64,000 bases of DNA from the NCBI GenBank assembly GCA_001643675.2, contig LSRY02000010.1:186001-250000 (forward strand). Direction: 5' to 3'. The notes below the pieces were generated by a model that was not told where the DNA came from, ran no database searches, and worked only from the letters and a program-made list of their open reading frames with translations. Source of the stretch: Monocercomonoides exilis PA203. Its lineage: Eukaryota > Protista > Preaxostyla. Of this stretch, positions 9,947-64,000 are shown in pieces; within the stretch, counting starts at the first letter, position 1, and every line of letters starts with the position of its first letter. Both the position numbers and the translations under genes were made by a program.

Positions 9947-10009
9947 TCGACAGATCTTTGTCGAGATCAGTCGAACGACGAAGATCAGTCGTTTGACAAA
10001 GATCAGTCG
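9947..10009 (+). repeat. Subterminal repeat array: near-palindrome plus 3 x AGATCAGTCG at 18-bp period
   Basis: TCGACAGATCTTTGTCGA at 9947-9964. AGATCAGTCG starts at 9964, 9982 and 10000. Confidence 0.8.
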
Positions 10010-20808: not shown

Positions 20809-22230
20809 ATGCAAGAGGACAGAGCTCACTACCTGTCAAACGTCAGTGGAAAACATATTTTTGTTACAGGAGGAATGGGATTAGTTGGACATCATATTCT
20901 TAACATCTTATCTCAGCTTGGGGCAATCGTAACATGTTATGATATCTCCGTTCCGCGTACTTCAAAAGAAGTGAACGAAAAATCAACATTAACAACATCT
21001 AATTTCTGGAGTAAAATAGAAAAAAACGGTAATTTGAAATTTATTAAAGGAGATATTTTGGATTTACAACTTTTAAAACAGTCTTCTCGCGGACAGGATG
21101 CAGTCATTCATCTGGTATCTCGAGGCACTGATCACTCTTCAAAAGGAGAGGACATAGAAAAAGTTAATGTAGAAGGCATTAAAAATGTGATTGAATGCTG
21201 CAAACATAACGGAATACACTATCTTGTTGCAACTTCAGGTTCAACGGTGATTTTTGATGGGAAGCATTCGCATCACATGCTTTCTGAAGAACTGCCTTAT
21301 CCGTCAGTGTTTGTGGATTTTTATTCAGAAACAAAGGCACATGGAGAAAAACTTGTTCTGGAGGCAAATAATCTCAATGGAGATAACTGGCTTCTAACGA
21401 CTTGTTTAAGACCAGGAATTATATACGGACCTGGCGCATGGATGACCATCGGAAAAGTTGTACATCTTGCAAAAAATCGCAAAATGCTTGTTCAGATTGG
21501 AAAAGAAAAAATCCCTCTTATTCATTCTCATGATGCAGCCTACGCTCATGTTCTTGCTCTTTCCCAACTGCTTCATTATTCACATCACCCTTCTTCAAAC
21601 TCTACCAAGAACAACAGAAAACATTCAACAATTTCATCATCATCTAATGCACAAGATTCATTTCATCCTTCATTTCATGAAACTGTTCCTCTTTGCGCAG
21701 GGAAAGCTTACTTTGTTCATGATGGTCATCCACGAAATATTGTGTCTTGGTGTTCTCCTCTTCTTCAATCACTTCATCTTCAGGCGCCAAAAGTTGTCCT
21801 CCCTTCATTTCTCGGGAAAATATTCGTCTTTCTTGCAACACTACTTTGTTTTATCAAAAATTTTTGTTTGGGTTTTCTAAAAACTGTTTTTCCGTGTTGT
21901 TCAAAGCAAGATAAACTAAAAAATGCTCATCCTTCTGCTTCCTCCTCAACTCCTTTGCAACTCTCTGCATCTTCGCATGAACAATCAGACACAATTCCGT
22001 TTTTCATTCGAAGCACAGTTGAATGCACATATTCAATAAGTCAAATAGAACATGATCTCAACTTTTTCTCCATTGTGACACCTGAACGTGGACTTGCCGA
22101 ACTTGAAGAATATTACAAGCAATTACTGGAAGTTGAAGAACTTGCTCAAAGAACAGAAAACATAAATAATAGAGGCACATCCAAATCTCCTGGTATATTT
22201 TTCACTTCAGTTAGCAAAAAAGAAGATTAA
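20809..22230 (+). CDS. Extended SDR, 3-beta-hydroxysteroid dehydrogenase/NSDHL/SDR42E1-like, 473 aa, intronless
   Basis: TGGMGLVG nucleotide-binding motif, GDILD, DAVIHL, VNVEG, catalytic YSETK, LRPGIIYGPG, AGKAYFVHDG, and a C-terminal hydrophobic segment. Confidence 0.85.
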   Translation: MQEDRAHYLSNVSGKHIFVTGGMGLVGHHILNILSQLGAIVTCYDISVPRTSKEVNEKSTLTTSNFWSKIEKNGNLKFIKGDILDLQLLKQSSRGQDAVIHLVSRGTDHSSKGEDIEKVNVEGIKNVIECCKHNGIHYLVATSGSTVIFDGKHSHHMLSEELPYPSVFVDFYSETKAHGEKLVLEANNLNGDNWLLTTCLRPGIIYGPGAWMTIGKVVHLAKNRKMLVQIGKEKIPLIHSHDAAYAHVLALSQLLHYSHHPSSNSTKNNRKHSTISSSSNAQDSFHPSFHETVPLCAGKAYFVHDGHPRNIVSWCSPLLQSLHLQAPKVVLPSFLGKIFVFLATLLCFIKNFCLGFLKTVFPCCSKQDKLKNAHPSASSSTPLQLSASSHEQSDTIPFFIRSTVECTYSISQIEHDLNFFSIVTPERGLAELEEYYKQLLEVEELAQRTENINNRGTSKSPGIFFTSVSKKED

Positions 22231-32973: not shown

Positions 32974-39350
<6,377 letters not shown>

Positions 39351-44904: not shown

Positions 44905-46980
44905 GGGTCAGTTATTTATTGGGACCCTTTTTTTTTATTGGGACCTTTTTTTTTGATATGAAAAAATATTAAATAAAAATTAAAAAAACACAAATGACGA
45001 ATCCAATTTACGTATAACTTTTCTTTTTCCTTTTTTTCTTTCAATTACATTGATTTCTTCCTTTTCATTTTCATGATCATCATCTTTCACTTCAAATTTT
45101 CTCTTTATTTTTTTCATTTCAACCAAAGACTCTAACTCATTATCGTCTTTTTGCTCTTCTTTTTTCATTTCTTCAGAAGAATTCTTTACATCATCAACTT
45201 TTTCTTCCTTTTCTTCTTTTTCTTCTTTTTCTTCTTTTTCTTCTTCTTTAATTCCCAAATGTTCATACCAATCATTCAGTAGCTTCTCATCAGTAATTAA
45301 TTTGCCATAGAAGTCGAATCTGTTTGAATGAGTTGAAGGTTGATATTCCGATGTTTCTGGCAGCTTCATGAGAATCGGCCCAGATTCGTTATGAAGAACT
45401 CCACTCGTTGCGAAGGCTTTTTTAATGACAGCAGGTGAGAGGGCGGTATGAATTGCTTGAGGGAGAACATCCACAAGAGCTGTTCTTTTCGATGAAGATG
45501 TCGATGAAGATGGAGGTTCATATTTTGTTTGCAACTCTGTTTTCAGAACAGCGAAGACTCCTCTGTCAAGAGGCTGTGCGATATGTGTGCTGTGAGGAAT
45601 GAATGTGACGACGTCGATATTTTCTTTTTGAAATTCTCTCCAGATTGTTGGATCTGCGCGAGAAATGTGTGAGTCGATGAGAAGCAAGCAGCGAGAGTTT
45701 TCCAGTGACATGCGCTTTCTGCGATCGATTATTCCTTGAAGGAGTGTTGAAAGTGCGTATTTTTTGAATTGATTGCAGCCCATCCAACCACTTCCGTTCG
45801 GCCAGATATCCAAAGTCTGTGACAACAGCGGCTTCATTTCATCAGGAAGACTTTTGCTAGGCCATAGAATCACAGAAGGAAGTGCAAATCCATCAGCAGC
45901 CACAGCAGCGACCAGAGTCGAATTCGCCATTTTCGGTGGTTCTTTGCGAAATCCTGGATTTTCATTTTTTGGATGAACCACGCTCAGCTTAGAATTGGTA
46001 GGAACTCTCAGTGAAGACTCATCCATATTAAATATCAATTCTTTGCAGTATTCATTTTTTTCATGTAAGCCGTCCAGCAATGAATACCAGGGCTGTAGAA
46101 CACTTTGGCACGACACCGCAAGGCGATTAACATCAACATTTTTCGGCGAACTTCTCTTTAGCTCTGGATGGCGCTTAACAAATTGGTAAGCCGTAGCCAT
46201 TGAAACGTTAACGTATGGGGCGTCTTCGTCGTCTGTATCATTTATGACATTTTCCATCTAATATATTTATTAGAATTATTAATTATTTAACAACAACAAA
46301 CCAGTTCGCGAACTTTCCGTATAGGCAAACAGCTTCCAGATCTTGATTCAATGATTATTTCATCCAGAACAATTTGTTCTTTGTCTCCTATAACAAATTG
46401 CGGTCTTCCCACTTTTGAAACCAGCCTTTTGCTTCTCAGCGCCCGAACAGCGTTTTTGATCCTTTTTCGTGAGAATTCCATGGAGTTTATAGCGTCTGTA
46501 ATCCTGACAACTCCATCAACCACAATGCGCGCCATCCGTTCCAGCCGATTGTCAATCCTTCTGAAATCGAAAGATTTCATTGCAGCACGTAATTTCCTTT
46601 GTCCAGCAATTCTCTTTTGTTCCACAGCAATTTTCATTTTTTTATTATGGTTATGATCTTAAGTCCAATTTATTAATTTATTAATTTTAATTTTCAATTT
46701 TCATTGAAATTAAATTTTTATTTACATTCAATACGAATTTAAATGGTTTTATACCCCTTGTTACACACCTATTTATTTATTTTTTTCGATGGAAGGGATT
46801 AACCCCCCCATCTCCCCCCCATTGGAAATAGGCTTCGTATTCAAATGTAATTTTCCTAATTTTCAGGGTTTGCTTATATACTGATAATGTTTATAAATAT
46901 ATAAAAAGTGGGAATTTTAATTTTCTTTTTAAAAATTTCGGCACCGTTAAAAAAAAAAGGTCCCGATTAATTACTGACCC
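44905..46980 (-). mobile_element. pogo/Fot-like (Tc1-mariner superfamily) DNA transposon, apparently autonomous (element A)
   Basis: TIRs GGGTCAGTTATTTATTGGGACC and GGTCCCGATTAATTACTGACCC, TA on both flanks, enclosing a DDE_1-type transposase gene. Confidence 0.92.
44980..46637 (-). CDS. pogo-like DD35D transposase, 2 exons (46637-46302, 46257-44980), 537 aa
   Basis: A 44-nt GT..AG intron (46301-46258) joins the two ORFs in frame. Catalytic motifs IFNMDES, LLLIDSH and HIAQPLD have 35 residues between the second and third Asp. VGRP precedes the second HTH. No internal stops. Confidence 0.9.
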
Positions 46981-50829: not shown

Positions 50830-51778
50830 ACGTGACTAAAGTTTTTATTATTCCGCTGAAACACTTCATGTGCTTTTTTTCACTATAAATTTCTAACTTT
50901 TCTTTCTTAATAATAATTGCGTTAACTCATATTTACTATCTGTAATGATTGAAGAAAGTGTTATACAAATGGAAACTTCGACAGCTCTGTTAATGCATGC
51001 TGGATATTTCACCTCACTGTTTGTATTTGGTTTTGTAACTTTGAAGAATCTTAAATAAACGCAAAATAAGAGATACTAACGGAAATACAGAAGAAAAATG
51101 AAGAAAAGGGGAAAGGCTTGTTGTTGATCTTTATGAATGCTCTCTTTTGCTCAATATCTGTCTTTAAATGTGACGAAAGAAATGATTGATATTTGAGTGG
51201 CTATTTTCTGAAAATAACATTCTTAAGAGAGGAAAGAGAGGAAATTTAAAAAGAAGAGTGTTCGAAAAGATGAAAGAATAAGAAAATTATGATGTGATAA
51301 CAAGCTTTTGTGAACCATTTGATTTTCTTGGAATAGAAAATTTTGTTTATTTTCTTTGAATATTTCTGATAATTTTTTGAATGATAAAGGAAACAATATG
51401 ATTGCATAAAACGTTATGAAGTTCAGCTTTCCATATTCCATTGATATGAAACTCGACAAACACATTCTTTCTTGTTAGAGAAAAAAATGATATTTTGATT
51501 CTTTCTAAAATCAGAACAAATCAACAAGCAAACAAGCAAGCAAATGAATTAATCAATAAAGTGAGAAAGATTGAAAACAGTCAAAATTCACAATTGAACT
51601 TTTTTTAATACATCAATTCTTTGCTCTTATTGCAGTTATCGATATTCAATTAGCTTATTGAAAACCATTTGATAATTTGATTTAATATCAATGTTTTCGA
51701 CATAATTCCAATAATATTTCTCTTTTCATAATATTTTCAAACAATATTATATTGAAAAAACTTTGTGAAACTTTTAAT

Positions 51779-54700
51779 ATGGTTCTGCAGGATTTTTCTA
51801 AAAAAAAGATCATTTTCGTTTATTTTTTATCGAAAGCATCCATCAGGAACAAAAGCTGTTCAACCTCATTTTCACAAAATATTTCCTGCATGTCGGAGCT
51901 TCATGTGCACAAAAGTGTTCGTTTCACCTGGAAATTTCTTCTTGCAGCATTTCTGATAAAAAGCAACGAAATCATTTCAGTTCCTGCAGCCCAAATTACC
52001 ACAGATGATGATTTTGTTCAGGATGTGAACAGAAGAGAACAGCCAGAAAATTATGGTGCTTGCAGTCGAGTTTGGAGACAAAAAAAGATTCACGAGAACA
52101 TTCGTCACACATCGTTGTTTATGTTCTCAACTTTGGCCAATTCCTCGCTCCACTTCTCCACAATGCAGTTTTTCACCACCTCTCTGAATGGCAACATCCT
52201 GGATATGCATGGCTCCGAGTGTCTGCTGCATTCCTGCTGTTGTGTTCTGGCAAGGGATTTGCAGCAGTCGTTGTTTGCGATGAACGATGGTGATTGCATC
52301 CGCCTCGTGAACTTTTCTTTGCTTTCAGCTTTTGATTGCCAGCTCCGCTCTTTGGTGCTCAACCCTCCTCGTTCCTTGTCCAACTCTGCAAATTGCGAAC
52401 TGTCTGTTTGCTCGTGTGCCTTTGCTTCGTTTGGGGTTGTCGACCCTCCCTTTTTGGCACCTTCAATCTGCTCGCATGTTCTCATATCCCACTGTGCACT
52501 CGCAAACATCACCAGAAGCACAAGGGGCTGTGACTGCAGAACAATGAAAGCACAGATTTCGCAGGATATGTTGAGCTGCAGTTTTGAGGGAGTGGAGGAT
52601 GTGTTTTATGATGGGATTGTTTCCTCCATCAACTCCCCACAAACAGCATCTCTTCATTCACTGAACAACACATTCAATCGCAACATGCGAAAGTCAAATT
52701 TGAATGAGCAATTCATTGGAACAGGTATTAACAGATCTATTTCTTGCTCCTTCATGAATGACACTTTCACAAATTGCATCTCCGAAATTGAAGGAGATGA
52801 AATTGCGAATGGAGGAGCTGCCATTAGTATTCGAGGTGATTCGAGTGAACTCAATGTGGAATCATGCTCATTTATCAACTCCACCGCAAAATACTTTGCA
52901 ACAATTCTCGCAAGAAATTTAAAATCTATGTCTGTTAACAATTCATCAATAATTAATGGAACTGCCAAACCAAATCACGTTGGAGGAATCATGTGCTATG
53001 ATCCTTTTTCAGAAGGGGTGAGTACATCTCACTGTGTGTTTATGAACAATAATGCATCGAGAATTGCAGCCTTATATTATTACAGGCAGAACGCTTCAAC
53101 GTTGAACACATTAAGCGTGATCGACTGCGATTTTGAAAATAACATTGCAAGAGATGCGTATGCAGGAGCATTTGGAACACGAGATGGATTGACAGGAATA
53201 TTCAGGATGAGTGAATGCAAGTTTGTGAACAACAAAGCAAAATATGGCGGGGCATTGTACTTCGAAGCCTATTCTCCGCCAGCTGATAATCCAAAGCCGA
53301 AATTCATGTTGTTCTGCTATTTCCACAACAATGTGGCAAGCGACAAGCAGGGGCATGATTTGTATTTTGTTCCGCTTGTGCTGACAGAAACACCGTTTGA
53401 GCAGTCATCATCAACAAACAGGCAGAATAGGGTGTTCTACAATAATTCTGCCACTGGATACGATTTCTGGCTGGCATATCCAGTGCGATATGTGCATGCA
53501 TCAAATGGGTCTGATGGGGCTGGGTGTGGCGAAGAGGAAGAGGAGGGGGAGAGATGTGAAACAATCCACTATGCGCTGCAGGAGCTGAAGAACCCGTATG
53601 GGGGAGACATCGTGTTGCTGCCTTCGGCATTCAGTCCGAATGAGGCTTTGGTGCTCAGTGGGATGGTGGTGAATATGTGTGGGAAAGGGAGCGAGAAACC
53701 AGGGATCGCAGTTCCAGAAAGGGTGGGAGGACCGTTTGTGGACATATCAGGGGGGTTGGTGAATGTGAGCAGTGTGGCAATAACGAAGAGCACAAACGAG
53801 CAGATGTCGCTGGTGAGAGTGGGAGACTCGGGATTGTTGGTGTTCAGCAAGGCAGAAATAGCATGCAACTGCGCTCCACAGACAGAATATGTGGAGAGTG
53901 TGTTTGTGGTTGAAGATGGGGTGCTGGTGCTGGAGTTGAGCACGATCTCGCTGTTTGTGCTGAAGGGCAAGCCGCTGGTGGAGTGGGCAGCGTCAGGGCA
54001 TGTGCGAGTGGCAGACTCAGTGTTTCGGTACATCAGCCGGGTGGAAGGGGATGGGAGTGTGTTTGAGAAAAGACTGGGGAGGCAGGAGGTGGTGGAGCTG
54101 GGGAATGTGAGTTTTGAGAGATGCATGTGCGGGAAAGGGAATGGCGGGGCAGTTGCGGTGTGGCTGGGGGAGGAGAGCGGGGTGGCGATTGGGAACAATT
54201 CGTGTGTCAGGTTTGATGGATGCAGTGTGGGAGCTGAGGGGGAGCAGAAGGGGAAAGGAGGCGGGGTGTATGTGAAGGCTGTGGAGGGTGGAGAGCAGGC
54301 AGGACAGGCAGGACAGTCTGGGTGGTTTGTGTTTGGGAGGGAAGTTGTGTTTTCAGGGTGCGAGGGGTGGAGGGGGAAGAATGTGTTTGTGGATGTGAAA
54401 AATCTGAATTGGTCGGTGAGTGTTTCGAGCATGCAGTTTGAGGTGAAGTTTGAGGCAGAGAATCACAAGGAGCTGATGGGGTTTGAAGGCGGAGACGAAT
54501 CGTATGCAATCCCTCTGTGCCTGTATCTGCAGGAGTTTGGAGATCCAGGGTTTGTGGGGGGAGCGAACAGCCGGGACTTCAGCGGGTGTGGATATCGCGG
54601 GTATGGGTGCAGCACACTGGCACACATTGCTCAACTGCGGTTTGGGGGGTTGAACAAGAACATTGTGTTGGAGGAAGGGTTTGTGTGGGAGGAGAAGGTG

Positions 54701-57700
54701 GAGATGGAGCGAGAGGAGTGGACAGTCGGGTGTGAGCAGGAGCACACGCTGATTGAGATGGGGCAGATAACAAGCTGTGGAGCAGGTGGGGATGGGGTGA
54801 TTGTGTCAGCGAAGAGGAACACGCTGTCGAACATTGTGTTCAGGATGGGGTCGGGTGTTGGGGTGGGTGTTGCGAGTGTGGTGGTCTGCCGAGGCAGCAT
54901 GCTCACGATGGCAGGGTGTGGGGTGCAGAAGCAGCAAGAAGACACAGTGTTTGGGTGTGTGTTTGTGCGTGTTGAGAAGGGAACAGTGAATGTGAGCTCG
55001 TTTGCTGTGAGCGGGATCAGATTTGTGTCTGGGTGCCTTGTGGGTGTGGAAGGAGAGCACAGCAAATGTGTGATGGATGGGTTGACATGCACGAACACCA
55101 CCACAGGTGGGGCAGGTGGAGTGATTGGGGTGTCTTTGTGCGGGTCACTCACTCTGCAGAACTCGAATATTTCAGATGGATCACAGGCACAGTCCCCGTT
55201 TGTGAAGGCAGGAGCACTGAGCACAATGCAAGTGATGAACTGCTCGTTTGTGTCGATGCAGCGCTCGAGTGGGAACGGATCGTGTGTGGATGTTGAGTGT
55301 GGTGATGGCGAGTGTGTGGAGGGAGAGAACGGGAGGATGGTGGTGATGGAGAACACTTGGTTCGAAGGGTGCAGTGTGGGTGGGGCATGCGAAGGAGGGG
55401 GTGCACTGGCACTGAGCATGGGGAAGTGCACACAGCTGAGAGTGACTGGGTGCACATTCGTGGGATGTGCAGCTCCAACAGGCAGCATGCACGGTCTGGG
55501 AGGAGGGATGCTGGTGCGCTTTGCAGGCGAGGCTGCTCCGTTTGTGGTGTCTGATCCAGTCTTTTCGGCAGACAATCCGAACGAAGCATCGTTTGGGCAC
55601 GATCTCTTCATTGAAGCACCGAGGCTGCGGTCAGTTGCCACTGCACAGACGCTTCCCTTTGCGGTGGAGAGCGCGCTCTCAGCTGTCCACGCGTTTGAGG
55701 GGTACGATGGCAGCGACAAGGCACATGCCATCCCGCTCATATTCTTCGTTCGTGAAATGGGGAACACGGCTCATGCAGACTCGGCAGCTGGGGTGGATGT
55801 TGATGCATGTGGGTTTGCAGCGTATCCGTGCCACACGCTTTCGCAGGCTGTGAGGCGCCTTTCAGGATGGCCCAAGCGTGTAGAAGTGGCAGGTCCGTTC
55901 GCGATGGAAGAGGCGCTGGGCCTGTCTGATCCAGCAGATCTGCAGATTGGCGGAGCAGCGCCAGGAGCAGAGTGCACTGTGATTGGCAAGGAATCTGGTG
56001 GTGAGGGGCTGGTTGTGCTCTCGGGAGAGCTGCCATCATCAACAGCCGCATTCTCTTCGTTGTGCTTTGTGCTTCCGCTCTCCATCAAGCAGCACCGCTC
56101 GCTGTTCTGCCAGGCCTCGCAGGGCACGCTTGCTGTGTCGAGTGCCTCCTTCATCCCCCACCAGTCAGCTGCCTCGCACACATTCACGCTGTTCACCGCG
56201 CTGTCTGGGCGTGTTGTGGTGGAGGATGTGGTGTGGCAGGGGATCAGGCTCATCGACACGCAGTGTGCAAACATGAGCGGGACGAGTGTGCTGGTGATGA
56301 GGAATGTGTCCTTTGTGGAAACGTGGACATCGTCTCCGAAGGGTCTGGTGTGGGTGTGGTCTGCAGGTGCAACAGCCTCCATGGAGGATGCGCGCTTTGA
56401 GCTGGCATCGCAGGAGCATCCCTGCCAGGCTGTGCATTCTGACCAAGCGCTCTCACTCGAGATCGCCAATGCCTCGTTCATCAACCAGTCTCGGAACACT
56501 GGGCATGGGAGCTGTGTCGAGTGCACAGTGAAGAGCGAGCAGACACTGGCGATCCAGGGATGCTCGTTCGAGATGTGCAGTGCGACCGATGGCAATGGGG
56601 GTGGGGTGTGTGTTGCGATGGAGGCAGGCGGAACAGCCAAAATCACCAGCTCTGAAGGCACAGCAACAGCATCTACTGCTGCTCCATCCACATTCACGAA
56701 ATGCACATCGCATCGAGGAGGAGCAGGGAGTGGAGGGTTTGGCGGGGGGTTGTTTGGGGTGCTTCAGGAAGGGGCGGTGGACTTTGTGGTTGGGGGTGTG
56801 GTGTTCAGCGGATGCACAGCTGACAGCGGGAACAACCTCTTCCTGCAGGCAAAGCAGCTGGCATCAGTGGCCAACAACAGAACACTGGGGTTTGTGTTCG
56901 ACATTGCCGAGGGAGTTGCTGATCTGAACGATCTGTGTGGGTGCAGCACAGACACCGCTGGCACACAGGCACCCATCCCCCTTGTTGTGTTCTTCCGCGC
57001 TCCACCGGCAGAGCGGTGTGTGGCTGATGGCGGGGCAGACAATGCAGTGTGCGGGTATTCGGACTATCCCTGCGAGACAATTGGTCAAGCAGCAAGCCCG
57101 CTAGTGGCACAGCAGTCGGTGGCGATCAAGATCCTGAGCCCCTTCACCCTCAAAGACGAGGTGCATCTGGAGGTTTGTCCCACAGTGATATCGGCTGGGG
57201 AGGTTGGGGGTACGATGGGTGTTGTGAATGGTGGGCGAGGAGAAAGGGCAGGGCTGATTGAGACATCGTGTGAGGTGACGTTTGTTTCTGTGTGCTTTGC
57301 GCATCCAGCTGTGCTGACAAACAGGAAGGCATTGATTGTGTGCAACGGTGGGGTGCTTGGGCTGAGCAGCTGCCAGTCGGTGCTGCAGGCAACAGCTGGG
57401 CTGAAGTGTGGGTTTGCGATTGTGCGTGTTGTGAAGGGGTCGTTGAGCATGAGCAGCTTCGAGATCAGAGGCACGCCTTTTGGGGTTGTTGGGCCATTTG
57501 TGTTTGAGGGGGCTGCTCAGGAGATCGAGAAAGTTGCCATCCACAACCTCACGCTGGAGGATGTGGCAACAGAGTCGGAGAGCGGGGTGCTGAGTGTCAG
57601 CAGGGTTGGGGTGTGGAAGCTGGGGAACTCGACAATCTCGAACTCTGCGCAGCAGTACTGCCCAGTGGTGGCGATGAGCGAGGTTGGGAGCAGCGAAGTG

Positions 57701-60700
57701 AGCAACGTCACATTTGAGAATCTGAACAGACACACCGGGTTTGGAGGGGTGGTGAGCTGTGCCATTGGCGCCAGCCAGACAGCACGCTTCGAGCGCTGCA
57801 CATTTGTGAGCTGTGAGATAATGAGCGCGAGCATGAAAGGAGGGAGTGTGTTTGCGAGTGTGGAGCAGACAGGCACGTTCGTGTTTGACACGAACAAGGT
57901 GAGCAGCAGTGGGGTGGATGGAGGCAGCGGACTTGGCGGGGGGCTGTATGTGTCGATGCTGGGGAGAACATCGGCCATCTCGATGAAGTCAAACACATTT
58001 GTGGCGAACAGGGCATGGAAGGGCAGGCATCTGTATCTGGAGTGCCCATCGCCTCGCAACACGATCCGGCCGCTGGACTTCGAAGACTCGTTTGATGCAG
58101 AGATGGAGGATGACGAGCTGTGGGTGCACGACGGGAGCTCAGGAGCAGTGGTGGACGAGACGCTGAAGCGGTATCTGTTCTCGTCGAGCGAGGAGATTGT
58201 GGTTGTCGACAGGGCGAGCGGGAGCGACACACCCACATGCGGGTCAGACCTGTTTCCGTGCGAGAGTGTATCGGAAGGGTATCTGAGGATGGGCACGAAG
58301 CAGACAACAATCCTGGTTGTGAGCTCGGCAGCACTCGCCACAGAGATCCGCAGAGACAGCCAGGCACTCACGATTGCTGGGCGGAACACCACATCGCTGC
58401 TGGTGCTGGGCGCAGGCGGGCACTTGGTGGTGAGCCCAAGCGAGGCGCTAGTCACGCTGACGATCCACAAGCTGGTGCTGAGCATGCCAGCAGAGCTGAG
58501 CCACACAGAAGCTGTTCTGGTGGGAGAGGGCGCGCTGCTGATGCGGCAGTGCGAGTTCAGAGCAGCAGACGAGGAGCAGAGCCACACAGGCACAGGAGTA
58601 TGGGCGCTGTGCATCCGGGGTGGAAAGGCGCAGCTGGATGCGGTTGGGGTGCGGGGCATGTGCTTTGCAGCAAGTGGCGGGTTTGTCTGGATGTGTGGAG
58701 GGAGCGCGCATCTCACACGCATCAGTGTGGAGTCTGTCTCAGCAGGTGGAGCTGGGCTGGTTGTTGGAGAAGGGAGCGGGGCACTGGAGCTGAAGGGATC
58801 GTCGTTTGAGGACTGTGTGCTGGATGGCGGGAGCACACTCAGCATTGGGAGAGGAGTGGATGCAGAGCTGTCTGGGAGCTGCTCGTGGAGCAGGTGTCGG
58901 TCGTCTGCTGGGAATGGGGCAGCGCTGAGGTGCAGCCTGGCTGGGTCGCAAAAGCTGAATGTGTCTGACTGCTCGTTCCAGGAGTGTGTGCTGGATGGAA
59001 ACATCAATGGCAAAGGCAATGGCAGTGGCAGTGGCAGTGGCAACAGCGAAGGGAAAGGGAAAGGGAAAGGAGGAGGGATATTCCTCGGGATCGACCAGAG
59101 CTCGACAAACAGCTTCAAGCTGTCTCATCTGGCATTTGGAGGGAATGAAGCAGCCTTCGGAAACAATCTGTTTCTGAAGTGTGCCGACCTGAACACAACA
59201 GCAACACCAGCCAGAATGGTGGATTTCATCTGCTCTGGAGATTCGCCACACGATCTCGAAGGAACAGACGAGCATCTCTTCTCGGGTGGTGTGCACGATC
59301 TGCGCCTCTTCCTGCAGCAGCGCCAGGCCTCCAGCTCCTGCATCTCTCCCAACGGCTTCGATATCCTGGGGTGCGGGTCAGAGGGGTATCCTTGTGCATC
59401 GCTCTGGCGAGGCATGCTGAACATCAATCCGGGCTCAGCCGACAAGACGCTGTCCATCAAGGCATCAGCACTCATCCAAAACGAGTTTGACCTGACATCC
59501 AGCACAGTCGCCTCCAGCAGCAGCACCGAAAAGGCAACAATCACATTTGCATCAGCCATTCTGGACAGCACCCGCAGCTGTGTTGTTCTGAGCACAGGCA
59601 GGCTGAGCTTCAACCGCCTCGATTTTTCTGTTGCTGGAGGAGCCTTTCTTCGCCACTCCGAGCTCATCTCCTCCTCCACGCCTCAAGGCCAGCTTCTGTT
59701 CGGCAACTGCTCGTTTGCTCCAGCTGGCACTTCTCAGATTGAAGGCACACTTGTTCGTGCTGAAGGAGGCAGCGTGCAGATGGAGGGGTGTGTGTTTGGT
59801 GCTTTTGCTCCCTCTTCGTCTCTCCTGTGCATCAGCGGCTCTCTGGAGATGAACACAACTGCATTTCAAGGGAGCCGTGCCTTGGGATGCGATGCAGGCG
59901 GGCTGATTGGGGTGAGTCTGGGGAGCGGGTGCCATCTGAGTGCTGCTGGGTGCGAGTTCAGCCACGGCGAGTGCAACAAGAAGACAGGCAGAGGAGGTGC
60001 GCTGTATGTGAAGAGCACAGAAGCAGATGCAGCTGGGCAGCCATTCCTTTTGGAGGCAGTCACTTTTGCGAGCAACGATGCAGCCAAAGGCAGAAACATT
60101 TTTGTGGACTGCTTCGACATCAATGCGAGTGTCACCCCAGCCACCTTCCACTTCCCGTATGAACCGTTTGTCGATGATCCGAATGCGCTTGTGGGGAGCG
60201 ACCAAACATTTGTCGATGCTGATCTGTTCCGCTTCCTTGTTCCGTACACATCCAGCGAGATCCACCTGTTGGATGCCGGATTCGACATTGCCCGGTGTGG
60301 ATCGCCGAACGATCCCTGCCGATCCTTTGTGACTGGCTTCGAGCACATCGACGCCTCGGCTGCACACAAAACGATCAGCATCGGCTGCTCAACAGCCATC
60401 AGCCGTCCCGCTGACATGTCGAACTTCACCTGCCAGTCGTTGCCCAGCGAGGAAGCAGCGCAGTCAGTGCTGCTGTTCCAGGAAGACAGCCAGGGATCCA
60501 ACCCATTCCTCCTGAACAGCTGGAGCCTCTCCCTTTCAGGGATCTGCCTCCAAGCTGTCAACGGGTTCAGCAACGAAGTCAGCGCAATCATCCTCAGCAA
60601 GCAGGGTTCATTGGCTCTGGACAAGTGTGCTTTTGAGCCACACACAAGTGTCGCTGAGCTGGGTGCTTATTCCTTTGCTGTTGTGGAAGCAGGAAGTCTC

Positions 60701-63700
60701 ACCTGCACACAGTTTGAGTCGACAAACGCACATCTCGTGTGCTCGATGTTTCTGCTGCATGCAGGATCAGCAGGCACATTCGATGCAATCCACATTTCTT
60801 CATGCAGCCTGTCCAACTGCTCCCTTGTCGAAGCAGCAAGCAGCACCAACCGCTCTCCCAATTCCCCTTCCTCAATTTCCATCTTCAGATCGACGTTGGT
60901 GGATATTGTGCAAACAGCGAACAAGTCGTGTGTTGTTTGGAGCAGGGGAGAAGGCGGGGCGGAGGTTGTTGTGAACGAGACAGATGTGGAAGGGTGCCGG
61001 TCGAGCAGCACAGAAAAGGGCGGGGCTGTGCATTATTTGCTGAGCAGCGGAGGACGGCTCGCCTGTGTGAACTCGACACTGATGCAGTGCAGCTGCTCCA
61101 CGGGAACAGGGATGGGCGGCGGGGTGTATCTGGAGACGAGCATGGACAGAGAGCTGGGGTTTTTGTTGCAGAAGATGGAGTTTGACAGCAACGCAGCGAG
61201 GCACGGGCGGGACATCTTTGTTGTGTGCCGGAACATCTCGGGGCAGATCAACGAGACGCAGTTCCGGTTTGACCTGCGAGAAGGGGTGTACAACCGGATC
61301 AACGCGATCTGCGGGCTGGACGATCTGAGCGAAGGGGTGGTCGACCTGATCTCGTTCATCACCACATACCAGGCGGCTGTGGTGTTTGTGTCGTCGGCGG
61401 GGGGCGAGGCGGGTGGCGGGAACAACAGCCGGCAGTGCGGCTCGGCGAGGCAGCCGTGTGCCACGATCGGGTATGGGCTGGGCCATGTTGTGATCGAGTA
61501 TGGGAGTGCTGTTGTGGTGGAGGGTGTGGGGTTGCTCGAGTGCGAGGCTGATTTCGAGAACATATCGCTCACCTCGAAGACAAGCAAAATGGCAGTGGTC
61601 TCGTTCAGCGAGCCGATTGTGCAAACACGCGATGCTCTGGTCGAGGCAGCTGGGCGTGTGAAGGTGGAAGGCATCCAGCTGGCGCCTGGCAGGGATCTCT
61701 CCTTGAGCCACTCGTTTGTGTTCTCAGCCGCAAATGCTGAATTCCAAATGATCTCATCGGCCATCCGCCCTGCTGAAGAGAGCAGCCCCAGTCTTCCAAG
61801 CCTTCCAAGCCTCCCCACCCTCGTTATGTGCAGCAGCGGTGAATGCACAATCGAGAAGTGTGTTGTGCGCTCTGTGGCCTTCCGCTCGTTCTTTGTTGGT
61901 GTGGACTGCGTTCTGTCAGTGAACAGGCTGAGTCTGTCGTCAGTTGAATTGGGTCAGCGTTGCTTCGATCTTTCGCAGGGCACAAAAGGGGTTGTTCTTC
62001 ACGAGGTCTCATTCGAGGGGATCAGGGCTGAGAGCACATTGGTTGTTGTGGAAAAGATGAGTGGAAAGGTGTTGGCAGACAACGAAGGCAGCGATGAGAT
62101 GTCTTTGTCATTGATCCAGTTCAGCAACATTTCTGTTCAGTCAGATGTGCCGGCTGCTGTTTCTTTGATTTCTCTGGAGAATCCTGTTGTCATGCAAAAC
62201 TGCTCGTTTGTTGGCTGCCAGTCGCATGCTGAAAGAGGAAGTGCTGGATCGATATTGCGCTGCTCGGCAGCTCGGGTGTGCACATGCATGTTTGATGGCA
62301 GCACCAGTGGCTCTTCTTCATCACTTTCCAGCTCAGGTGCAGCTGGTGGAGCGGAGGAGCTGTGCAGCTGGAATGGATCAGTTGTGGATGCAGAACAGAG
62401 CGAGGTGGCGATGGCAGACACCACCATTGCAAACTCGGCTGAGGGTGGACTGAGTGTGTCGGGGGGTTGTGTGAGTGCAGAGGCTGCCAACTTCACAGGC
62501 AATGCACCCTCGATCCCGAACTACCAGTCAGCCAGAAGAAACGTGCTGTGCAAGGCAAACGGGAAGCTGGTGCTGGTGAGTGTGAAGGGAGGAGATGGAA
62601 TGCTGCCAGACTCGTCACTGTGGATTGCCAACGAAGGGTGCGAGCTGGGGGGTTTGGCAAGTGACCGGGCATCTCCATTGTTCATCCCGCAGCTGACGAA
62701 CGTGACCATGGCACAGACAGGCACAGCCACACAGCTTGTGTTTTGGGGGGTGCTTCTCCTGCCCTGCAACCTCTTGTTCAAGGTTGTCACAGCACTTGGC
62801 GATGAGGAGGCAGTCGAGAAATACGAATTCCCCGAGAGCGGGTTTGTCTCAGAGACAGAAGCTCATGGCGTTATTCCCTCGTCAATACTCGAAGGCTCGC
62901 CAGATGAGGCAGAAGTCACTGTTTCGATTCTGTTTGGACCGATCCGCTCGGCATCCACTTCTTCTGTGGTGTTGAAGAACAGAAGCAAAAGCCAGACAAG
63001 TGGAGATGGAATCGTTGTTGAAGGAGGAAAAGAAGGAAAATCATGGGCCTTAATAATTGCAGTTATATTTGTTATTTTGTTCTTACTAGTTCTTGTTGTG
63101 TCTATTATCCTGGCTGTTCGATGGAAGAAGCAAAAGAGAAGAACAGAAGAATTGGAGATAATTGTGGAAGACAACATCAGAAAGGATCCGAAGGCATTTG
63201 AGATGGTGACGATGGAGATGTCTCCAGAGGCACAATGGAGGAGGGCAGAAAGAGAGGCTGAGAAGAAGAATGAAGAGAGGATAAAGAAGAGGGTGTATGA
63301 GAAAAGCTTGGGACATTCAGAGTCATCAGAACATCTTCTATCTGAGAGTGGCTCGACAGAATACATACTGGGAAAGGACTCAGATAAGATTCCCGATTGG
63401 GCACTGGAAAAGGAGGAAGAGGAAGAGATAAGAAAGAGAACGCCATCTCCATCCATTTCATCCACTTCAACAACAGACACTTCAGACACAGATACCACAT
63501 TTGTTCGAACGGAGAGTCTGTGCCCCACCACCTCATCGATGTCGAATCTGGTGGATGCAATGGCATGTTCATCTCCTCATGAGAAGCTGATTGTGGATTT
63601 GAGAGATTCGCTGTTCATGTTGCTTCATGGGAGAAATGAGAAAAAAGAGATGGCGATTGGCACCCTTCAGGAGAGAGAAGTGACAGCTGCCCAAATCCTG

Positions 63701-64000
63701 TTCTGGGTGGCGAATGGAGCACTTCACTCATTTGACGAAATGGAAAACAAACTTCAATCGTTGGCTAATCTGAGTCCTCACATTGTTTTGTTCTCAGAAC
63801 ACATGGTTATCTGCATTGCCATGCACTCTGAATGTTCTTCTTCAGATTCAGATTCATCTTCGATTTCATCATCCACGATTGTGACATCTTCGTCTGATGG
63901 CTCAAGAAGGAGCAAGAGATACACACGCTCTCCCCCACCTTCATCAGCGTTTGAGGATGATGAAGACAACAGAAATGAGTGTTTGCGATGGAAGGCGCCG
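51779..64000 (+). CDS. Giant single-pass membrane protein (at least 4074 aa, 3'-truncated by the window): repeated beta-helix-like ectodomain, TM helix, degenerate kinase-like tail
   Basis: Frame +2 was read open from ATG 51779 and at spot checks through to 64000 (..ECLRWKAP). None of the + strand ORFs listed for 52-64 kb lies in this frame, consistent with one stop-less ORF. GGAL/GGGVY and FxxN/FxxC repeats. TM WALIIAVIFVILFLLVLVVSIILAV at 63044-63118. True start codon uncertain. Confidence 0.9.
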   Translation, partial: MVLQDFSKKKIIFVYFLSKASIRNKSCSTSFSQNISCMSELHVHKSVRFTWKFLLAAFLIKSNEIISVPAAQITTDDDFVQDVNRREQPENYGACSRVWRQKKIHENIRHTSLFMFSTLANSSLHFSTMQFFTTSLNGNILDMHGSECLLHSCCCVLARDLQQSLFAMNDGDCIRLVNFSLLSAFDCQLRSLVLNPPRSLSNSANCELSVCSCAFASFGVVDPPFLAPSICSHVLISHCALANITRSTRGCDCRTMKAQISQDMLSCSFEGVEDVFYDGIVSSINSPQTASLHSLNNTFNRNMRKSNLNEQFIGTGINRSISCSFMNDTFTNCISEIEGDEIANGGAAISIRGDSSELNVESCSFINSTAKYFATILARNLKSMSVNNSSIINGTAKPNHVGGIMCYDPFSEGVSTSHCVFMNNNASRIAALYYYRQNASTLNTLSVIDCDFENNIARDAYAGAFGTRDGLTGIFRMSECKFVNNKAKYGGALYFEAYSPPADNPKPKFMLFCYFHNNVASDKQGHDLYFVPLVLTETPFEQSSSTNRQNRVFYNNSATGYDFWLAYPVRYVHASNGSDGAGCGEEEEEGERCETIHYALQELKNPYGGDIVLLPSAFSPNEALVLSGMVVNMCGKGSEKPGIAVPERVGGPFVDISGGLVNVSSVAITKSTNEQMSLVRVGDSGLLVFSKAEIACNCAPQTEYVESVFVVEDGVLVLELSTISLFVLKGKPLVEWAASGHVRVADSVFRYISRVEGDGSVFEKRLGRQEVVELGNVSFERCMCGKGNGGAVAVWLGEESGVAIGNNSCVRFDGCSVGAEGEQKGKGGGVYVKAVEGGEQAGQAGQSGWFVFGREVVFSGCEGWRGKNVFVDVKNLNWSVSVSSMQFEVKFEAENHKELMGFEGGDESYAIPLCLYLQEFGDPGFVGGANSRDFSGCGYRGYGCSTLAHIAQLRFGGLNKNIVLEEGFVWEEKVEMEREEWTVGCEQEHTLIEMGQITSCGAGGDGVIVSAKRNTLSNIVFRMGSGVGVGVASVVVCRGSMLTMAGCGVQKQQEDTVFGCVFVRVEKGTVNVSSFAVSGIRFVSGCLVGVEGEHSKCVMDGLTCTNTTTGGAGGVIGVSLCGSLTLQNSNISDGSQAQSPFVKAGALSTMQVMNCSFVSMQRSSGNGSCVDVECGDGECVEGENGRMVVMENTWFEGCSVGGACEGGGALALSMGKCTQLRVTGCTFVGCAAPTGSMHGLGGGMLVRFAGEAAPFVVSDPVFSADNPNEASFGHDLFIEAPRLRSVATAQTLPFAVESALSAVHAFEGYDGSDKAHAIPLIFFVREMGNTAHADSAAGVDVDACGFAAYPCHTLSQAVRRLSGWPKRVEVAGPFAMEEALGLSDPADLQIGGAAPGAECTVIGKESGGEGLVVLSGELPSSTAAFSSLCFVLPLSIKQHRSLFCQASQGTLAVSSASFIPHQSAASHTFTLFTALSGRVVVEDVVWQGIRLIDTQCANMSGTSVLVMRNVSFVETWTSSPKGLVWVWSAGATASMEDARFELASQEHPCQAVHSDQALSLEIANASFINQSRNTGHGSCVECTVKSEQTLAIQGCSFEMCSATDGNGGGVCVAMEAGGTAKITSSEGTATASTAAPSTFTKCTSHRGGAGSGGFGGGLFGVLQEGAVDFVVGGVVFSGCTADSGNNLFLQAKQLASVANNRTLGFVFDIAEGVADLNDLCGCSTDTAGTQAPIPLVVFFRAPPAERCVADGGADNAVCGYSDYPCETIGQAASPLVAQQSVAIKILSPFTLKDEVHLEVCPTVISAGEVGGTMGVVNGGRGERAGLIETSCEVTFVSVCFAHPAVLTNRKALIVCNGGVLGLSSCQSVLQATAGLKCGFAIVRVVKGSLSMSSFEIRGTPFGVVGPFVFEGAAQEIEKVAIHNLTLEDVATESESGVLSVSRVGVWKLGNSTISNSAQQYCPVVAMSEVGSSEVSNVTFENLNRHTGFGGVVSCAIGASQTARFERCTFVSCEIMSASMKGGSVFASVEQTGTFVFDTNKVSSSGVDGGSGLGGGLYVSMLGRTSAISMKSNTFVANRAWKGRHLYLECPSPRNTIRPLDFEDSFDAEMEDDELWVHDGSSGAVVDETLKRYLFSSSEEIVVVDRASGSDTPTCGSDLFPCESVSEGYLRMGTKQTTILVVSSAALATEIRRDSQALTIAGRNTTSLLVLGAGGHLVVSPSEALVTLTIHKLVLSMPAELSHTEAVLVGEGALLMRQCEFRAADEEQSHTGTGVWALCIRGGKAQLDAVGVRGMCFAASGGFVWMCGGSAHLTRISVESVSAGGAGLVVGEGSGALELKGSSFEDCVLDGGSTLSIGRGVDAELSGSCSWSRCRSSAGNGAALRCSLAGSQKLNVSDCSFQECVLDGNINGKGNGSGSGSGNSEGKGKGKGGGIFLGIDQSSTNSFKLSHLAFGGNEAAFGNNLFLKCADLNTTATPARMVDFICSGDSPHDLEGTDEHLFSGGVHDLRLFLQQRQASSSCISPNGFDILGCGSEGYPCASLWRGMLNINPGSADKTLSIKASALIQNEFDLTSSTVASSSSTEKATITFASAILDSTRSCVVLSTGRLSFNRLDFSVAGGAFLRHSELISSSTPQGQLLFGNCSFAPAGTSQIEGTLVRAEGGSVQMEGCVFGAFAPSSSLLCISGSLEMNTTAFQGSRALGCDAGGLIGVSLGSGCHLSAAGCEFSHGECNKKTGRGGALYVKSTEADAAGQPFLLEAVTFASNDAAKGRNIFVDCFDINASVTPATFHFPYEPFVDDPNALVGSDQTFVDADLFRFLVPYTSSEIHLLDAGFDIARCGSPNDPCRSFVTGFEHIDASAAHKTISIGCSTAISRPADMSNFTCQSLPSEEAAQSVLLFQEDSQGSNPFLLNSWSLSLSGICLQAVNGFSNEVSAIILSKQGSLALDKCAFEPHTSVAELGAYSFAVVEAGSLTCTQFESTNAHLVCSMFLLHAGSAGTFDAIHISSCSLSNCSLVEAASSTNRSPNSPSSISIFRSTLVDIVQTANKSCVVWSRGEGGAEVVVNETDVEGCRSSSTEKGGAVHYLLSSGGRLACVNSTLMQCSCSTGTGMGGGVYLETSMDRELGFLLQKMEFDSNAARHGRDIFVVCRNISGQINETQFRFDLREGVYNRINAICGLDDLSEGVVDLISFITTYQAAVVFVSSAGGEAGGGNNSRQCGSARQPCATIGYGLGHVVIEYGSAVVVEGVGLLECEADFENISLTSKTSKMAVVSFSEPIVQTRDALVEAAGRVKVEGIQLAPGRDLSLSHSFVFSAANAEFQMISSAIRPAEESSPSLPSLPSLPTLVMCSSGECTIEKCVVRSVAFRSFFVGVDCVLSVNRLSLSSVELGQRCFDLSQGTKGVVLHEVSFEGIRAESTLVVVEKMSGKVLADNEGSDEMSLSLIQFSNISVQSDVPAAVSLISLENPVVMQNCSFVGCQSHAERGSAGSILRCSAARVCTCMFDGSTSGSSSSLSSSGAAGGAEELCSWNGSVVDAEQSEVAMADTTIANSAEGGLSVSGGCVSAEAANFTGNAPSIPNYQSARRNVLCKANGKLVLVSVKGGDGMLPDSSLWIANEGCELGGLASDRASPLFIPQLTNVTMAQTGTATQLVFWGVLLLPCNLLFKVVTALGDEEAVEKYEFPESGFVSETEAHGVIPSSILEGSPDEAEVTVSILFGPIRSASTSSVVLKNRSKSQTSGDGIVVEGGKEGKSWALIIAVIFVILFLLVLVVSIILAVRWKKQKRRTEELEIIVEDNIRKDPKAFEMVTMEMSPEAQWRRAEREAEKKNEERIKKRVYEKSLGHSESSEHLLSESGSTEYILGKDSDKIPDWALEKEEEEEIRKRTPSPSISSTSTTDTSDTDTTFVRTESLCPTTSSMSNLVDAMACSSPHEKLIVDLRDSLFMLLHGRNEKKEMAIGTLQEREVTAAQILFWVANGALHSFDEMENKLQSLANLSPHIVLFSEHMVICIAMHSECSSSDSDSSSISSSTIVTSSSDGSRRSKRYTRSPPPSSAFEDDEDNRNECLRWKAP

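Follow-up and report, generated by a model that had tools for sequence, protein, structure and literature searches.

The last part of the 64,000-nucleotide window analysed here (the whole stretch of Monocercomonoides exilis DNA at positions 186,001 to 250,000 of contig LSRY02000010.1) raises the question of what a very long plus-strand reading frame, absent from the list of open reading frames, encodes and what its product might do. An earlier note, which had guessed from the letters that the DNA came from a gut-dwelling protist, as M. exilis indeed is, proposed a receptor or adhesin that couples a giant ectodomain to a catalytically dead kinase. We examined the frame, its transcripts and relatives, the folds of its parts and the selection acting on them.

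Reading frame, start site and transcripts

Translation confirmed 4074 stop-free codons on the + strand at 51779-64000, and no in-frame stop interrupts this interval. The frame is missing from the list only because the window ends before it does; the open reading frames that are listed across this interval are shadows on the minus strand, 259-533 aa long. Beyond the window the frame continues for 136 codons to a TAA stop (408 nt; contig C2 250001-250408, L001:3501-3908), giving 4210 codons in total from the ATG at 51779, upstream of which the nearest in-frame stop lies at position 51683. Likeness among three close paralogues begins at about 51860 and not before, a 1-nt deletion in one of them (paralogue A) throws the ATG at 51779 out of frame, and every 5' end of the RNA contigs from four runs lies at 51888, with none in the 487 nt upstream (51401-51887). 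The ATG at 51779 was rejected as probably not the start on account of the paralogue A frame shift and the RNA contigs, and the three observations together make the ATG at 51890 the likely true start of a protein of 4173 aa. Two close paralogues, of 4170 and 4171 aa, are likewise intact.

The N-terminus that follows this start resembles a signal peptide, moderately hydrophobic only in this copy (9-residue Kyte-Doolittle mean 2.36), and clear signal peptides are present in the relatives P0002, P0003, P0004, P0016, P0023 and P0024. The homologue search listed no match of the window gene to itself; the nearest annotated paralogue, MONOS_2747, was placed by tblastn on the same contig at a distance of about 110 kb and is 95.6 % identical over its full length. 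Its model begins 119 residues downstream of the conserved ATG by way of a predicted intron that the RNA contigs do not show, and it seems to miss the signal-peptide exon region.

The absence of a transcript had been named as grounds for giving up the gene, and RNA contigs from four runs cover 51888-57400, some of them identical to this copy over 464-629 nt. These are Logan contigs from one study, and contigs reveal neither full-length transcripts nor expression level; over part of the 5' region the three paralogues resemble one another too closely for contigs to be assigned. The same cultures yielded both contigs exact to this copy and contigs with differences of the paralogue type, and several copies are therefore co-expressed at the population level.

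Architecture and fold of the ectodomain

The domain map (Table 1) recovers the single membrane helix and the basic stop-transfer seen at the outset, and the tail, first put at 290 aa or more with kinase-like remnants, is 430 aa long in full. The protein is very probably a type I plasma-membrane protein, consisting of a rigid, probably N-glycosylated rod (a head followed by eight right-handed beta-helix domains in tandem, with Cys-containing N-terminal caps), one transmembrane helix and a tail with a truncated kinase domain. We infer that it is located at the cell surface.

Table 1. Predicted parts of the protein, in window positions
Feature	Position	Strand	Basis
Probable start codon and signal-peptide-like N-terminus, ~28 aa, core KFLLAAFLI	51890..51973	+	Paralogue comparison, RNA 5' ends, hydropathy
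Divergent N-terminal head domain	52091..53287	+	Three partial, weak module-profile matches (hmmsearch), iE 6e-3 to 2e-8
Beta-helix module 1, ORF aa 565-905	53471..54493	+	Profile iE 3.7e-15 and 1.6e-41
Beta-helix module 2, ORF aa 912-1312	54512..55714	+	Full-length profile match, iE 1.7e-103
Beta-helix module 3, ORF aa 1319-1725	55733..56953	+	Full-length profile match, iE 6.7e-92
Beta-helix module 4 (the one folded), ORF aa 1734-2120	56978..58138	+	Profile iE 1.4e-107
Beta-helix module 5, ORF aa 2129-2499	58163..59275	+	Profile iE 1.2e-62
Beta-helix module 6, shortened, ORF aa 2507-2810	59297..60208	+	Partial matches iE 3.9e-35 and 7.2e-33, profile 174-263 skipped
Beta-helix module 7, ORF aa 2815-3183	60221..61327	+	Profile iE 1.1e-85
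Beta-helix module 8, membrane-proximal, divergent, ORF aa 3189-3530	61343..62368	+	Profile iE 8.2e-22
Stalk, last module to membrane	62369..63043	+	No profile or Pfam match
Single transmembrane helix	63044..63118	+	Sole strongly hydrophobic 19-residue segment, Kyte-Doolittle mean 3.67
Basic stop-transfer RWKKQKRR and juxtamembrane region, tail aa 1-130	63119..63508	+	Column conservation, omega
Kinase-core remnant: alpha-E-like helix, degenerate catalytic-loop and DFG regions, tail aa 160-236	63596..63826	+	BRAF structural alignment
Ser-rich low-complexity insert replacing the activation segment, tail aa 237-284	63827..63970	+	pLDDT <50, omega 0.20
Start of kinase C-lobe with APE motif (LRWKAPE), continuing past the window	63971..64000	+	Translation, PF07714

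The ectodomain is rich in Ser, Gly, Val and Cys, as had been described (S 12.1, G 10.8, V 9.0, A 8.7 and C 3.9 %), and is built of eight Cys-capped modules, each of 300-410 aa. BLAST of the protein against itself (E 1e-3) detected no internal repeats because the modules are too divergent (16-27 % identity between modules), and they were recovered solely by motif-anchored alignment and profiles. Across 69 modules the conserved columns comprise Cys, Gly, one cap Asp and hydrophobic residues, and nothing else. N-x-S/T sequons number 54 in the ectodomain, compared with 27.7 +/- 4.8 in shuffled sequences, and 1 in the tail.

The AF2 model of module 4 has periodic short strands and high confidence (pLDDT 95.1, pTM 0.92), and its top Foldseek and VIA matches are all beta-helix proteins, with Z scores of 23-27 over about 300-330 residues. 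These include the RbmB lyase (Z 27.0, rmsd 3.2 A, 307 aligned residues in VIA-align), the PfbA adhesin (Z 25.8), the Vag8 passenger domain (Z 23.6), PL6 lyases (Z 23-26) and phage tailspikes (Z 23-24), as well as GH-type beta-helix enzymes, alginate epimerases and phage depolymerases. On the strength of this model we hold that the module is a predicted right-handed parallel beta-helix, the fold that the earlier note had proposed for the ectodomain. That note had taken GGA(I/L/V) and FxxN repeats as the mark of such a fold: the motifs are present (GGA[ILVM] 5, GGG[VILM] 7 and FxxN 18, the most Pmp-like GGA and FxxN motifs falling in the head domain) and the fold was found, but the Pfam family Chlam_PMP (PF02415) was matched only below significance (E = 1). 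Kinship with chlamydial Pmp proteins was accordingly not upheld by sequence, and there was no match to an autotransporter barrel.

Sequence searches placed no Pfam family over the ectodomain, whether the whole protein or 1000-aa pieces were used. DUF1565 (PF07602) had no significant match in the protein, PF13229 (Beta_helix) was matched weakly by 5 of the 69 modules (best E 1.3e-4), and the module profile matched nothing among PDB sequences. The nearest clusters by language-model features carry DUF1565, Chlam_PMP and Beta_helix (feature similarity 0.95), which serves as a lead only. PfbA, Vag8, chlamydial and Trichomonas Pmp-type proteins and tailspikes share the fold and the GGx(I/L/V) and FxxN-type turns, but bacterial beta-helix surface proteins are held by an autotransporter barrel or an LPXTG anchor whereas the M. 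exilis protein has a eukaryotic transmembrane helix, and, unlike these counterparts, it strings together eight to nine complete tandem domains.

The kinase-derived tail and the gene family

With PF07714 the tail scores 26.3 bits, above the cut-off of 23.1, but at profile positions 161-258 only, and no match before position 155 was found in any relative examined. Its best sequence matches include TKL kinases and the MLKL and ILK pseudokinases, over the C-lobe only; a profile built from the tail alignment (A3) reached E 8e-11 to TAK1 and MLKL. Structurally, the tail model aligns to BRAF 509-722 (Z 15.8), beginning after beta1-beta3 and alpha-C. Confidence is 75-93 pLDDT in the C-lobe and below 50 in the juxtamembrane region and the Ser-rich insert, with a whole-tail mean of 49.6; because the model is of low confidence overall, loss of the N-lobe rests mainly on absent motifs and absent profile matches. 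Among the 30 tails compared, APE is present in all, GxGxxG and HRD in none, and a DFG-like triplet (DFG/DLG) and a VAIK-like motif in one each. The stretches equivalent to HRD and DFG, in an alignment read by eye, are LANLSPH and IAMHS, invariant in the family. Given that GxGxxG and HRD are absent from all 30 tails and a DFG-like triplet occurs in one, we conclude that the tail is a pseudokinase. As part of the anatomy given above, it is very probably a truncated, catalytically dead kinase from which the glycine loop, the region of the ATP-anchoring lysine and the HRD and DFG aspartates are gone. The same truncation occurs in Blattamonas, and complete TKL kinase domains are present elsewhere in the M. 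exilis genome. The proposed layout of ectodomain, membrane helix and dead signalling domain is thus supported by the single transmembrane helix, the C-lobe-only matches and the lost motifs, and similarity to both a beta-helix and a kinase fold, the joint lack of which had been named as counting against it, was found.

Loss of catalytic residues with retention of the C-lobe is shared with ILK, MLKL and plant receptor pseudokinases, and implies a non-catalytic docking role. Those proteins, however, keep a full bilobal fold, whereas beta1-beta3 and alpha-C are undetectable in the M. exilis tail, and, unlike in ILK and MLKL, its activation segment is replaced by the Ser-rich insert. Column identity in the juxtamembrane region exceeds 90 % over 30 paralogues, and omega is 0.087 there (dS 0.83) and 0.063 in the kinase-core remnant. 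The two regions range over 0.06-0.09 at dS of about 0.75-1.0 and the tail overall over 0.06-0.3 at near-saturated dS, values which indicate that the tail is under strong purifying selection. The juxtamembrane region, predicted to be disordered or helical yet constrained (omega ~0.09), is an obvious bait for a signalling partner.

The tail motif has 871 matches in the genome and 0 in the control, and by this count the family has at least ~870 paralogues. A search with the tail returned 1390 first-look candidates, of which 98 were scored, each reaching E < 1e-190. Identity between the tail and at least these 98 genomic copies is 73-96 %, and 73 of the copies lie in open frames of at least 2000 aa; about a quarter lie in open frames below 2000 aa, and a few carry stops. 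The window gene has the features by which the family is recognized, a conserved 400-430-aa tail after a transmembrane helix at the end of a beta-helix open reading frame of more than 2000 aa. The module profile found 1526 representative clusters, and the 20 sampled were all from M. exilis or Blattamonas. Four giant open frames were considered as full-kinase members (C47:332771, C52:244016, C23:935922 and C67:94142). All carry PF07714 matches, three spanning most or all of the profile; they were dropped as not being receptor relatives because in none does the open frame extend upstream of the kinase match (open stretches of 346-658 aa that reach the end of the locus) and the ~8-9 kb retrieved upstream showed no beta-helix module.

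In the searchable text of two genome papers, this family is the largest of M. exilis, labelled 'protein tyrosine kinases' with 332 genes (Karnkowska et al. 2019, PMC6759080; Treitli et al. 2021, PMC8767320), and is listed among the TKL kinases (PMC6759080); the tail motifs are about 2.6 times as many as these published genes (871 vs 332). Neither a beta-helix ectodomain, a transmembrane helix nor the loss of catalytic motifs is described in that text, and a literature search on oxymonad pseudokinases and Monocercomonoides beta-helix proteins returned nothing relevant. The suggestion of an undescribed system needs qualifying, since the family is published under its tyrosine-kinase label (PMC6759080, PMC8767320). 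The evidence favours another identity, that of giant beta-helix surface proteins ending in a dead half-kinase, which probably make up a good part of the 35 % of the genome labelled 'unclassified repeats'. This would change the picture of the kinome, surface and genome composition of M. exilis, a model eukaryote without mitochondria.

Possible functions

We favour, at a probability of roughly 0.5, a receptor or adhesin whose variable rods bind glycans or bacteria and whose tail signals as a non-catalytic scaffold. The beta-helix rods would bind polymeric ligands, for example bacterial or host glycans, and the paralogues would jointly supply a wide recognition repertoire. Ligand engagement would be relayed by the invariant tail, probably through clustering; the tail itself would phosphorylate nothing and would act as a scaffold on which a shared partner in the cytosol docks, such as a complete TKL kinase or the uptake machinery. 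More tentatively, the ~870 genes, perhaps ~8 % of the genome, may form an unrecognized innate recognition repertoire in which diversified rods, differing in the bacterial or host glycans to which they are tuned, are all wired to one non-catalytic half-kinase hub and are diversified by patchwise exchange between paralogues. These proposals offer a hypothesis for how a bacterivorous gut commensal senses its surroundings.

Hundreds of paralogues with divergent, sequon-rich ectodomains and an almost invariant tail would also be expected of a variant surface coat comparable to the VSPs of Giardia with their invariant short tail, in which diversity would give protection or evasion and the role of the tail would lie in sorting, anchoring or the control of expression. 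Mosaic patches fit this reading as well: DNA identity to two close paralogues falls to 73-88 % at gene nt 11101-11700, a patch that overlaps the stalk, compared with 97-99 % elsewhere, and dS is 0.45 within the patch and about 0.05 outside it, which suggests exchange of segments. However, ectodomain omega of 0.1-0.5 among close paralogues is purifying, not diversifying, several copies are co-expressed at the population level, and a 430-aa tail with a kinase lobe at omega 0.06 far exceeds what a sorting signal needs. M. exilis is, moreover, described as a commensal in the searchable text of PMC6759080, and we regard a variant coat as rather unlikely. Less probable again are surface-tethered polysaccharide lyases or hydrolases for glycan foraging. 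The best structural matches are enzymes of these kinds (RbmB, PL6, GH-type enzymes, alginate epimerases and phage depolymerases) and M. exilis lives among gut polysaccharides and bacteria, but the fold alone cannot give the function because beta-helices serve enzymes as well as binders, and the non-enzymatic PfbA and Vag8 passenger score equally well. No acidic or basic catalytic residues are conserved over the 69 modules, in which the cap Asp is the sole conserved charged residue, sequence searches matched neither a CAZyme nor a solved structure, and enzymes would have no need of eight tandem copies or a signalling-type tail.

An active receptor of the tyrosine-kinase-like class, as the published label implies, is highly improbable: PF07714 scores above its gathering threshold and the family is listed under TKL kinases in the searchable text of PMC6759080, but the C-lobe-only match, the motif counts and the start of the BRAF alignment at residue 509, given above, all argue against catalysis. 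A decaying or selfish repeat is largely refuted and equally hard to credit. There is overlap between the family and the 28.9 Mb of 'unclassified repeats' reported in the searchable text of PMC8767320, and some copies are short or carry stops, as described above. Against this, the 4173-codon frame is open in all three close paralogues, with a whole-gene dN/dS of 0.23-0.26, the tail retains omega of 0.06-0.3 at near-saturated dS, transcripts are present and the upstream spacer is silent, and the module fold is predicted at high confidence.

If the more tentative reading of an innate recognition repertoire is true, the family would parallel, in a protist, the expanded receptor repertoires of animals and plants, with domains in a combination that had not been described. 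The transmembrane kinases (TMKs) of Entamoeba histolytica offer a comparison: they form a large type I family in which one transmembrane helix joins a variable Cys-containing ectodomain to a kinase-like domain in the cytosol. Some of these kinases are predicted to be inactive, and phagocytosis and sensing are the processes with which the family is linked. TMK ectodomains are far shorter arrays of CXXC and CXC repeats and not beta-helices, their kinase domain is mostly complete, and the family has about 90 members as against ~870 here.

An intact and transcribed reading frame

Translation of the window bore out the claim, in the earlier sequence-only note, of a hidden gene of at least 4074 codons. 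The closest in-frame stop on the 5' side of the giant frame lies at 51683, and in the locus sequence that overlaps the window's right end the frame terminates 136 codons beyond the window, giving an ORF of 4210 codons counted from ATG 51779. The frame was missing from the ORF listing because it overruns the window end. GC content is 46–59% in the gene versus 27–30% in the upstream spacer; the window corresponds to G000:C2:186001–250000, in an assembly that comprises 82.3 Mb in 101 contigs.

The closest database proteins in a homologue search came from Monocercomonoides exilis, plus one from the related oxymonad Blattamonas nauphoetae. The top match, MONOS_2747 (4054 aa, 95.6% identical), is not the product of the window gene: it matches at 100% a paralogue locus on the same contig, which also carries a third close copy. 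The MONOS_2747 model begins at the equivalent of window ATG 52053 in a different frame (stretch compared, 52053–52256), reaches the main frame by way of a predicted intron of 185 nt (window equivalent, 52070–52254) and is without 119 N-terminal residues, a signal-peptide-like segment among them.

In a DNA alignment of the 5' regions, similarity common to all three close paralogues begins only at around 51860, and a 1-nt deletion in one paralogue places ATG 51779 out of frame. Counted from the common ATG at 51890, the window gene and two close paralogues are open for 4173, 4170 and 4171 codons, and the protein likely starts there, with a signal-peptide-like N terminus. The hydrophobic core of this segment is modest in the window gene; several relatives have unmistakable signal peptides.

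Four metatranscriptomic RNA runs, all from one study, contained 52–59% of sampled words of 51401–57400. RNA contigs aligned to the window start at 51888 in all four runs, with none over 51401–51887, and this silence of the upstream spacer argues against DNA carry-over. Some contig pieces match the window copy exactly over 464–629 nt (52808–53271 and 53372–54000). No joints were seen in the aligned contigs of the four runs, which, on our reading of the comparison, cross the equivalent of the predicted MONOS_2747 intron unspliced; they are compatible with a minor spliced form and stop short of proving a full-length transcript.

Coordinates of features in the window, on its contig (C2) and elsewhere in the M. 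exilis assembly (G000)
Feature	Location	Strand	Remark
Giant gene within the window	window 51779–64000	+	4074 codons, zero stops
TM helix	window 63044–63118	+	sole strong hydrophobic segment, then RWKKQKRR
Shadow frames	window 53569–61848	-	eight ORFs, 259–533 aa, inside the giant gene; opposite a GC-rich coding strand, not genes
Low-identity patches	gene nt 901–1200, 6901–7200, 9901–10200, 11101–11700, 12301–12522, from window 51890	+	73–90% DNA identity
Paralogue locus of MONOS_2747	~C2:114.3–126.5 kb	-	
Third close copy	~C2:155.1–167.7 kb		
PF07714 match, other giant frame	G000:C47:332771–333481		most or all of profile
PF07714 match, other giant frame	G000:C52:244016–244684		most or all of profile
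PF07714 match, other giant frame	G000:C23:935922–936590		most or all of profile
PF07714 match, other giant frame	G000:C67:94142–94609		only profile positions 2–152
Open frame	window 16630–20652	+	1340 aa, no Pfam match
Skewed stretch	window 18001–20000		AT skew 0.51, GC skew 0.30
3-beta-HSD/NAD-dependent epimerase family protein	window 20809–22230	+	ordinary housekeeping-type ORF
P-type cation ATPase fragment	window 26772–31187	-	ordinary housekeeping-type ORF
USP7-like ubiquitin hydrolase	window 33480–37055	-	ordinary housekeeping-type ORF
DDE_1 endonuclease domain ORF	window 44980–46257	-	425 aa, E 2.8e-13

Beta-helix ectodomain and truncated kinase tail

Motif-anchored alignment resolved the ectodomain into tandem modules of 300–410 aa, each opening with a cap (G-x-D...C-G...P-C-x-T) and closing with G-x-G-G-G...F-x-x-N-x-A-x-x-G; a profile from 69 modules places eight, plus a divergent head, in the window protein. 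Pfam gave zero significant matches on the ectodomain, and the module profile matched none of the solved structures searched by sequence. The AF2 model of module 4, built on a 69-sequence alignment, reached pLDDT 95.1 and pTM 0.92, and its top Foldseek matches were without exception right-handed beta-helix proteins, the fold that had been proposed from repeat motifs. Superposition with VIA-align gave Z scores of 27.0 for the Vibrio lyase RbmB (rmsd 3.2 Å, 307 residues), 25.8 for the pneumococcal adhesin PfbA, about 25 for inulin fructotransferases and alginate epimerase A-modules, 23–26 for PL6 lyases and 23–24 for phage tailspikes. Columns conserved between modules hold Cys, Gly, one cap Asp and hydrophobic residues, a pattern structural rather than catalytic in look. 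The ectodomain carries 54 N-glycosylation sequons, a twofold excess over shuffles (27.7 ± 4.8), and the tail only one, which fits an extracellular ectodomain.

The PF07714 match of the 430-aa cytoplasmic tail is restricted to positions 161–258, and its PDB sequence matches (TNNI3K, TAK1, MLT, ILK, BRAF and MLKL) all run through the same C-lobe segment. M. exilis paralogues and two Blattamonas proteins show the same C-lobe-only match, so the truncation is older than the split of the genera. Confidence in the AF2 model is limited to around residues 161–204 and 285–390 (mean pLDDT 49.6); residues 142–388 superpose on BRAF 509–722 (Z 15.8, 188 aligned residues), starting past beta1–beta3 and alpha-C. 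Of the 30 tails inspected for motifs, none carried GxGxxG or HRD, one each carried a DFG-like and a VAIK-like string, and all carried APE. The tail is a truncated pseudokinase. The earlier note had read the dead kinase, the TM helix with its basic stop-transfer and the gut-dwelling protist host correctly.

A large family under selection

With the tail as query, a tblastn-type genome search yielded 1390 first-look candidates, of which 98 were scored. Every scored copy had E < 1e-190 and 73–100% identity, and 73 lay within open frames of at least 2000 aa; if they are representative, the family would span very roughly 6–7 Mb, or some 8% of the genome. The tail peptide IGMMLWEC, searched for as a degenerate DNA pattern, hit 871 genomic sites, versus 0 in the reversed control. 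The module profile recovered 1526 representative clusters (E ≤ 1e-3); the 20 sampled were all M. exilis or Blattamonas proteins, most named only 'hypothetical' or 'uncharacterized', with automatic names on three Blattamonas entries (adhesin-like, large repetitive protein and PPM-type phosphatase domain-containing). Blattamonas BLNAU_13651 (5090 aa) combines beta-helix modules with the same half-kinase tail, and its UniRef name, 'PPM-type phosphatase domain-containing', hints at extra cytosolic domains in some family members.

Karnkowska et al. 2019 (PMC6759080) give protein tyrosine kinases as the largest M. exilis gene family (TKL group, 320/332) and Treitli et al. 2021 (PMC8767320) report that these overlap 28.9 Mb of unclassified repeats. 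The ectodomain, TM helix and loss of catalytic residues are not described in the searchable text of either or of the 2023 Preaxostyla genomics paper, and full-text literature searches on pseudokinases in oxymonads or on beta-helix proteins in Monocercomonoides returned nothing relevant. The window gene is unexceptional within its very large family, which earlier papers already list under a name that misleads; new here are the protein architecture, the recognition of the tail as a pseudokinase, the pattern of selection and a count about 2.6-fold larger.

Comparison of the three close paralogues put dN/dS over the whole gene at 0.23–0.26. Most ectodomain windows gave 0.1–0.5, three gave 0.68–1.21 on very few substitutions, and the last 277 codons gave 0.04–0.12. 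Against 23 divergent paralogues, omega was 0.063 in the core remnant and 0.087 across the 130 juxtamembrane residues, rising to 0.20 for the Ser-rich insert and 0.31 for the C-lobe; at a tail synonymous divergence of about 0.75–1.04, such values indicate that tail near-identity is upheld by selection, not by recent copying alone. Constraint is strongest in the predicted-disordered juxtamembrane region and the dead active-site region, the pattern expected of a docking surface. Outside the low-identity patches, the window gene is 97–99% identical in DNA to its two close paralogues, a mosaic that suggests patchwise exchange (gene conversion) with other family members.

Possible functions and neighbouring frames

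The layout of the protein is firmly established: a giant type I protein combining a beta-helix rod, one TM helix and a truncated pseudokinase, encoded by an intact, transcribed gene under selection. For function, we put the probability at about 0.5 that the family is a repertoire of ligand-binding receptors or adhesins, whose ectodomains would bind ligands and whose signal would be relayed through the common non-catalytic tail; complete TKL kinase domains are encoded elsewhere in the genome and could be its partners. A variant protective coat, with which mosaic ectodomains are compatible and to which the constrained tail is less suited, is a distinctly weaker prospect. Tethered glycan-degrading enzymes are improbable: the lyase superpositions speak for enzymes, the structural look of the conserved columns against them. 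An active kinase, for which the PF07714 match and the published TKL label might speak, is very hard to reconcile with the missing GxGxxG and HRD, and junk repeats, a reading that the overlap with unclassified repeats invites, are equally hard to reconcile with the purifying selection and transcription.

Four other giant open frames (4163–6905 aa) with PF07714 matches, carriers of the complete TKL kinase domains among them, were tried as relatives of the beta-helix family and rejected: the roughly 8–9 kb of upstream sequence examined for them yielded no beta-helix module, and the frames do not extend upstream. The open frame ends upstream at the kinase match in all four, suggesting a kinase near the N-terminal end, and they appear to form a different family of giant kinases. 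Within the window, three housekeeping-type ORFs and the 1340-aa open frame, whose stretch includes an extreme compositional skew, lie upstream of the giant gene, and the DDE_1 ORF in the AT-rich region upstream of it is probably a DNA transposon of pogo/Tigger type.
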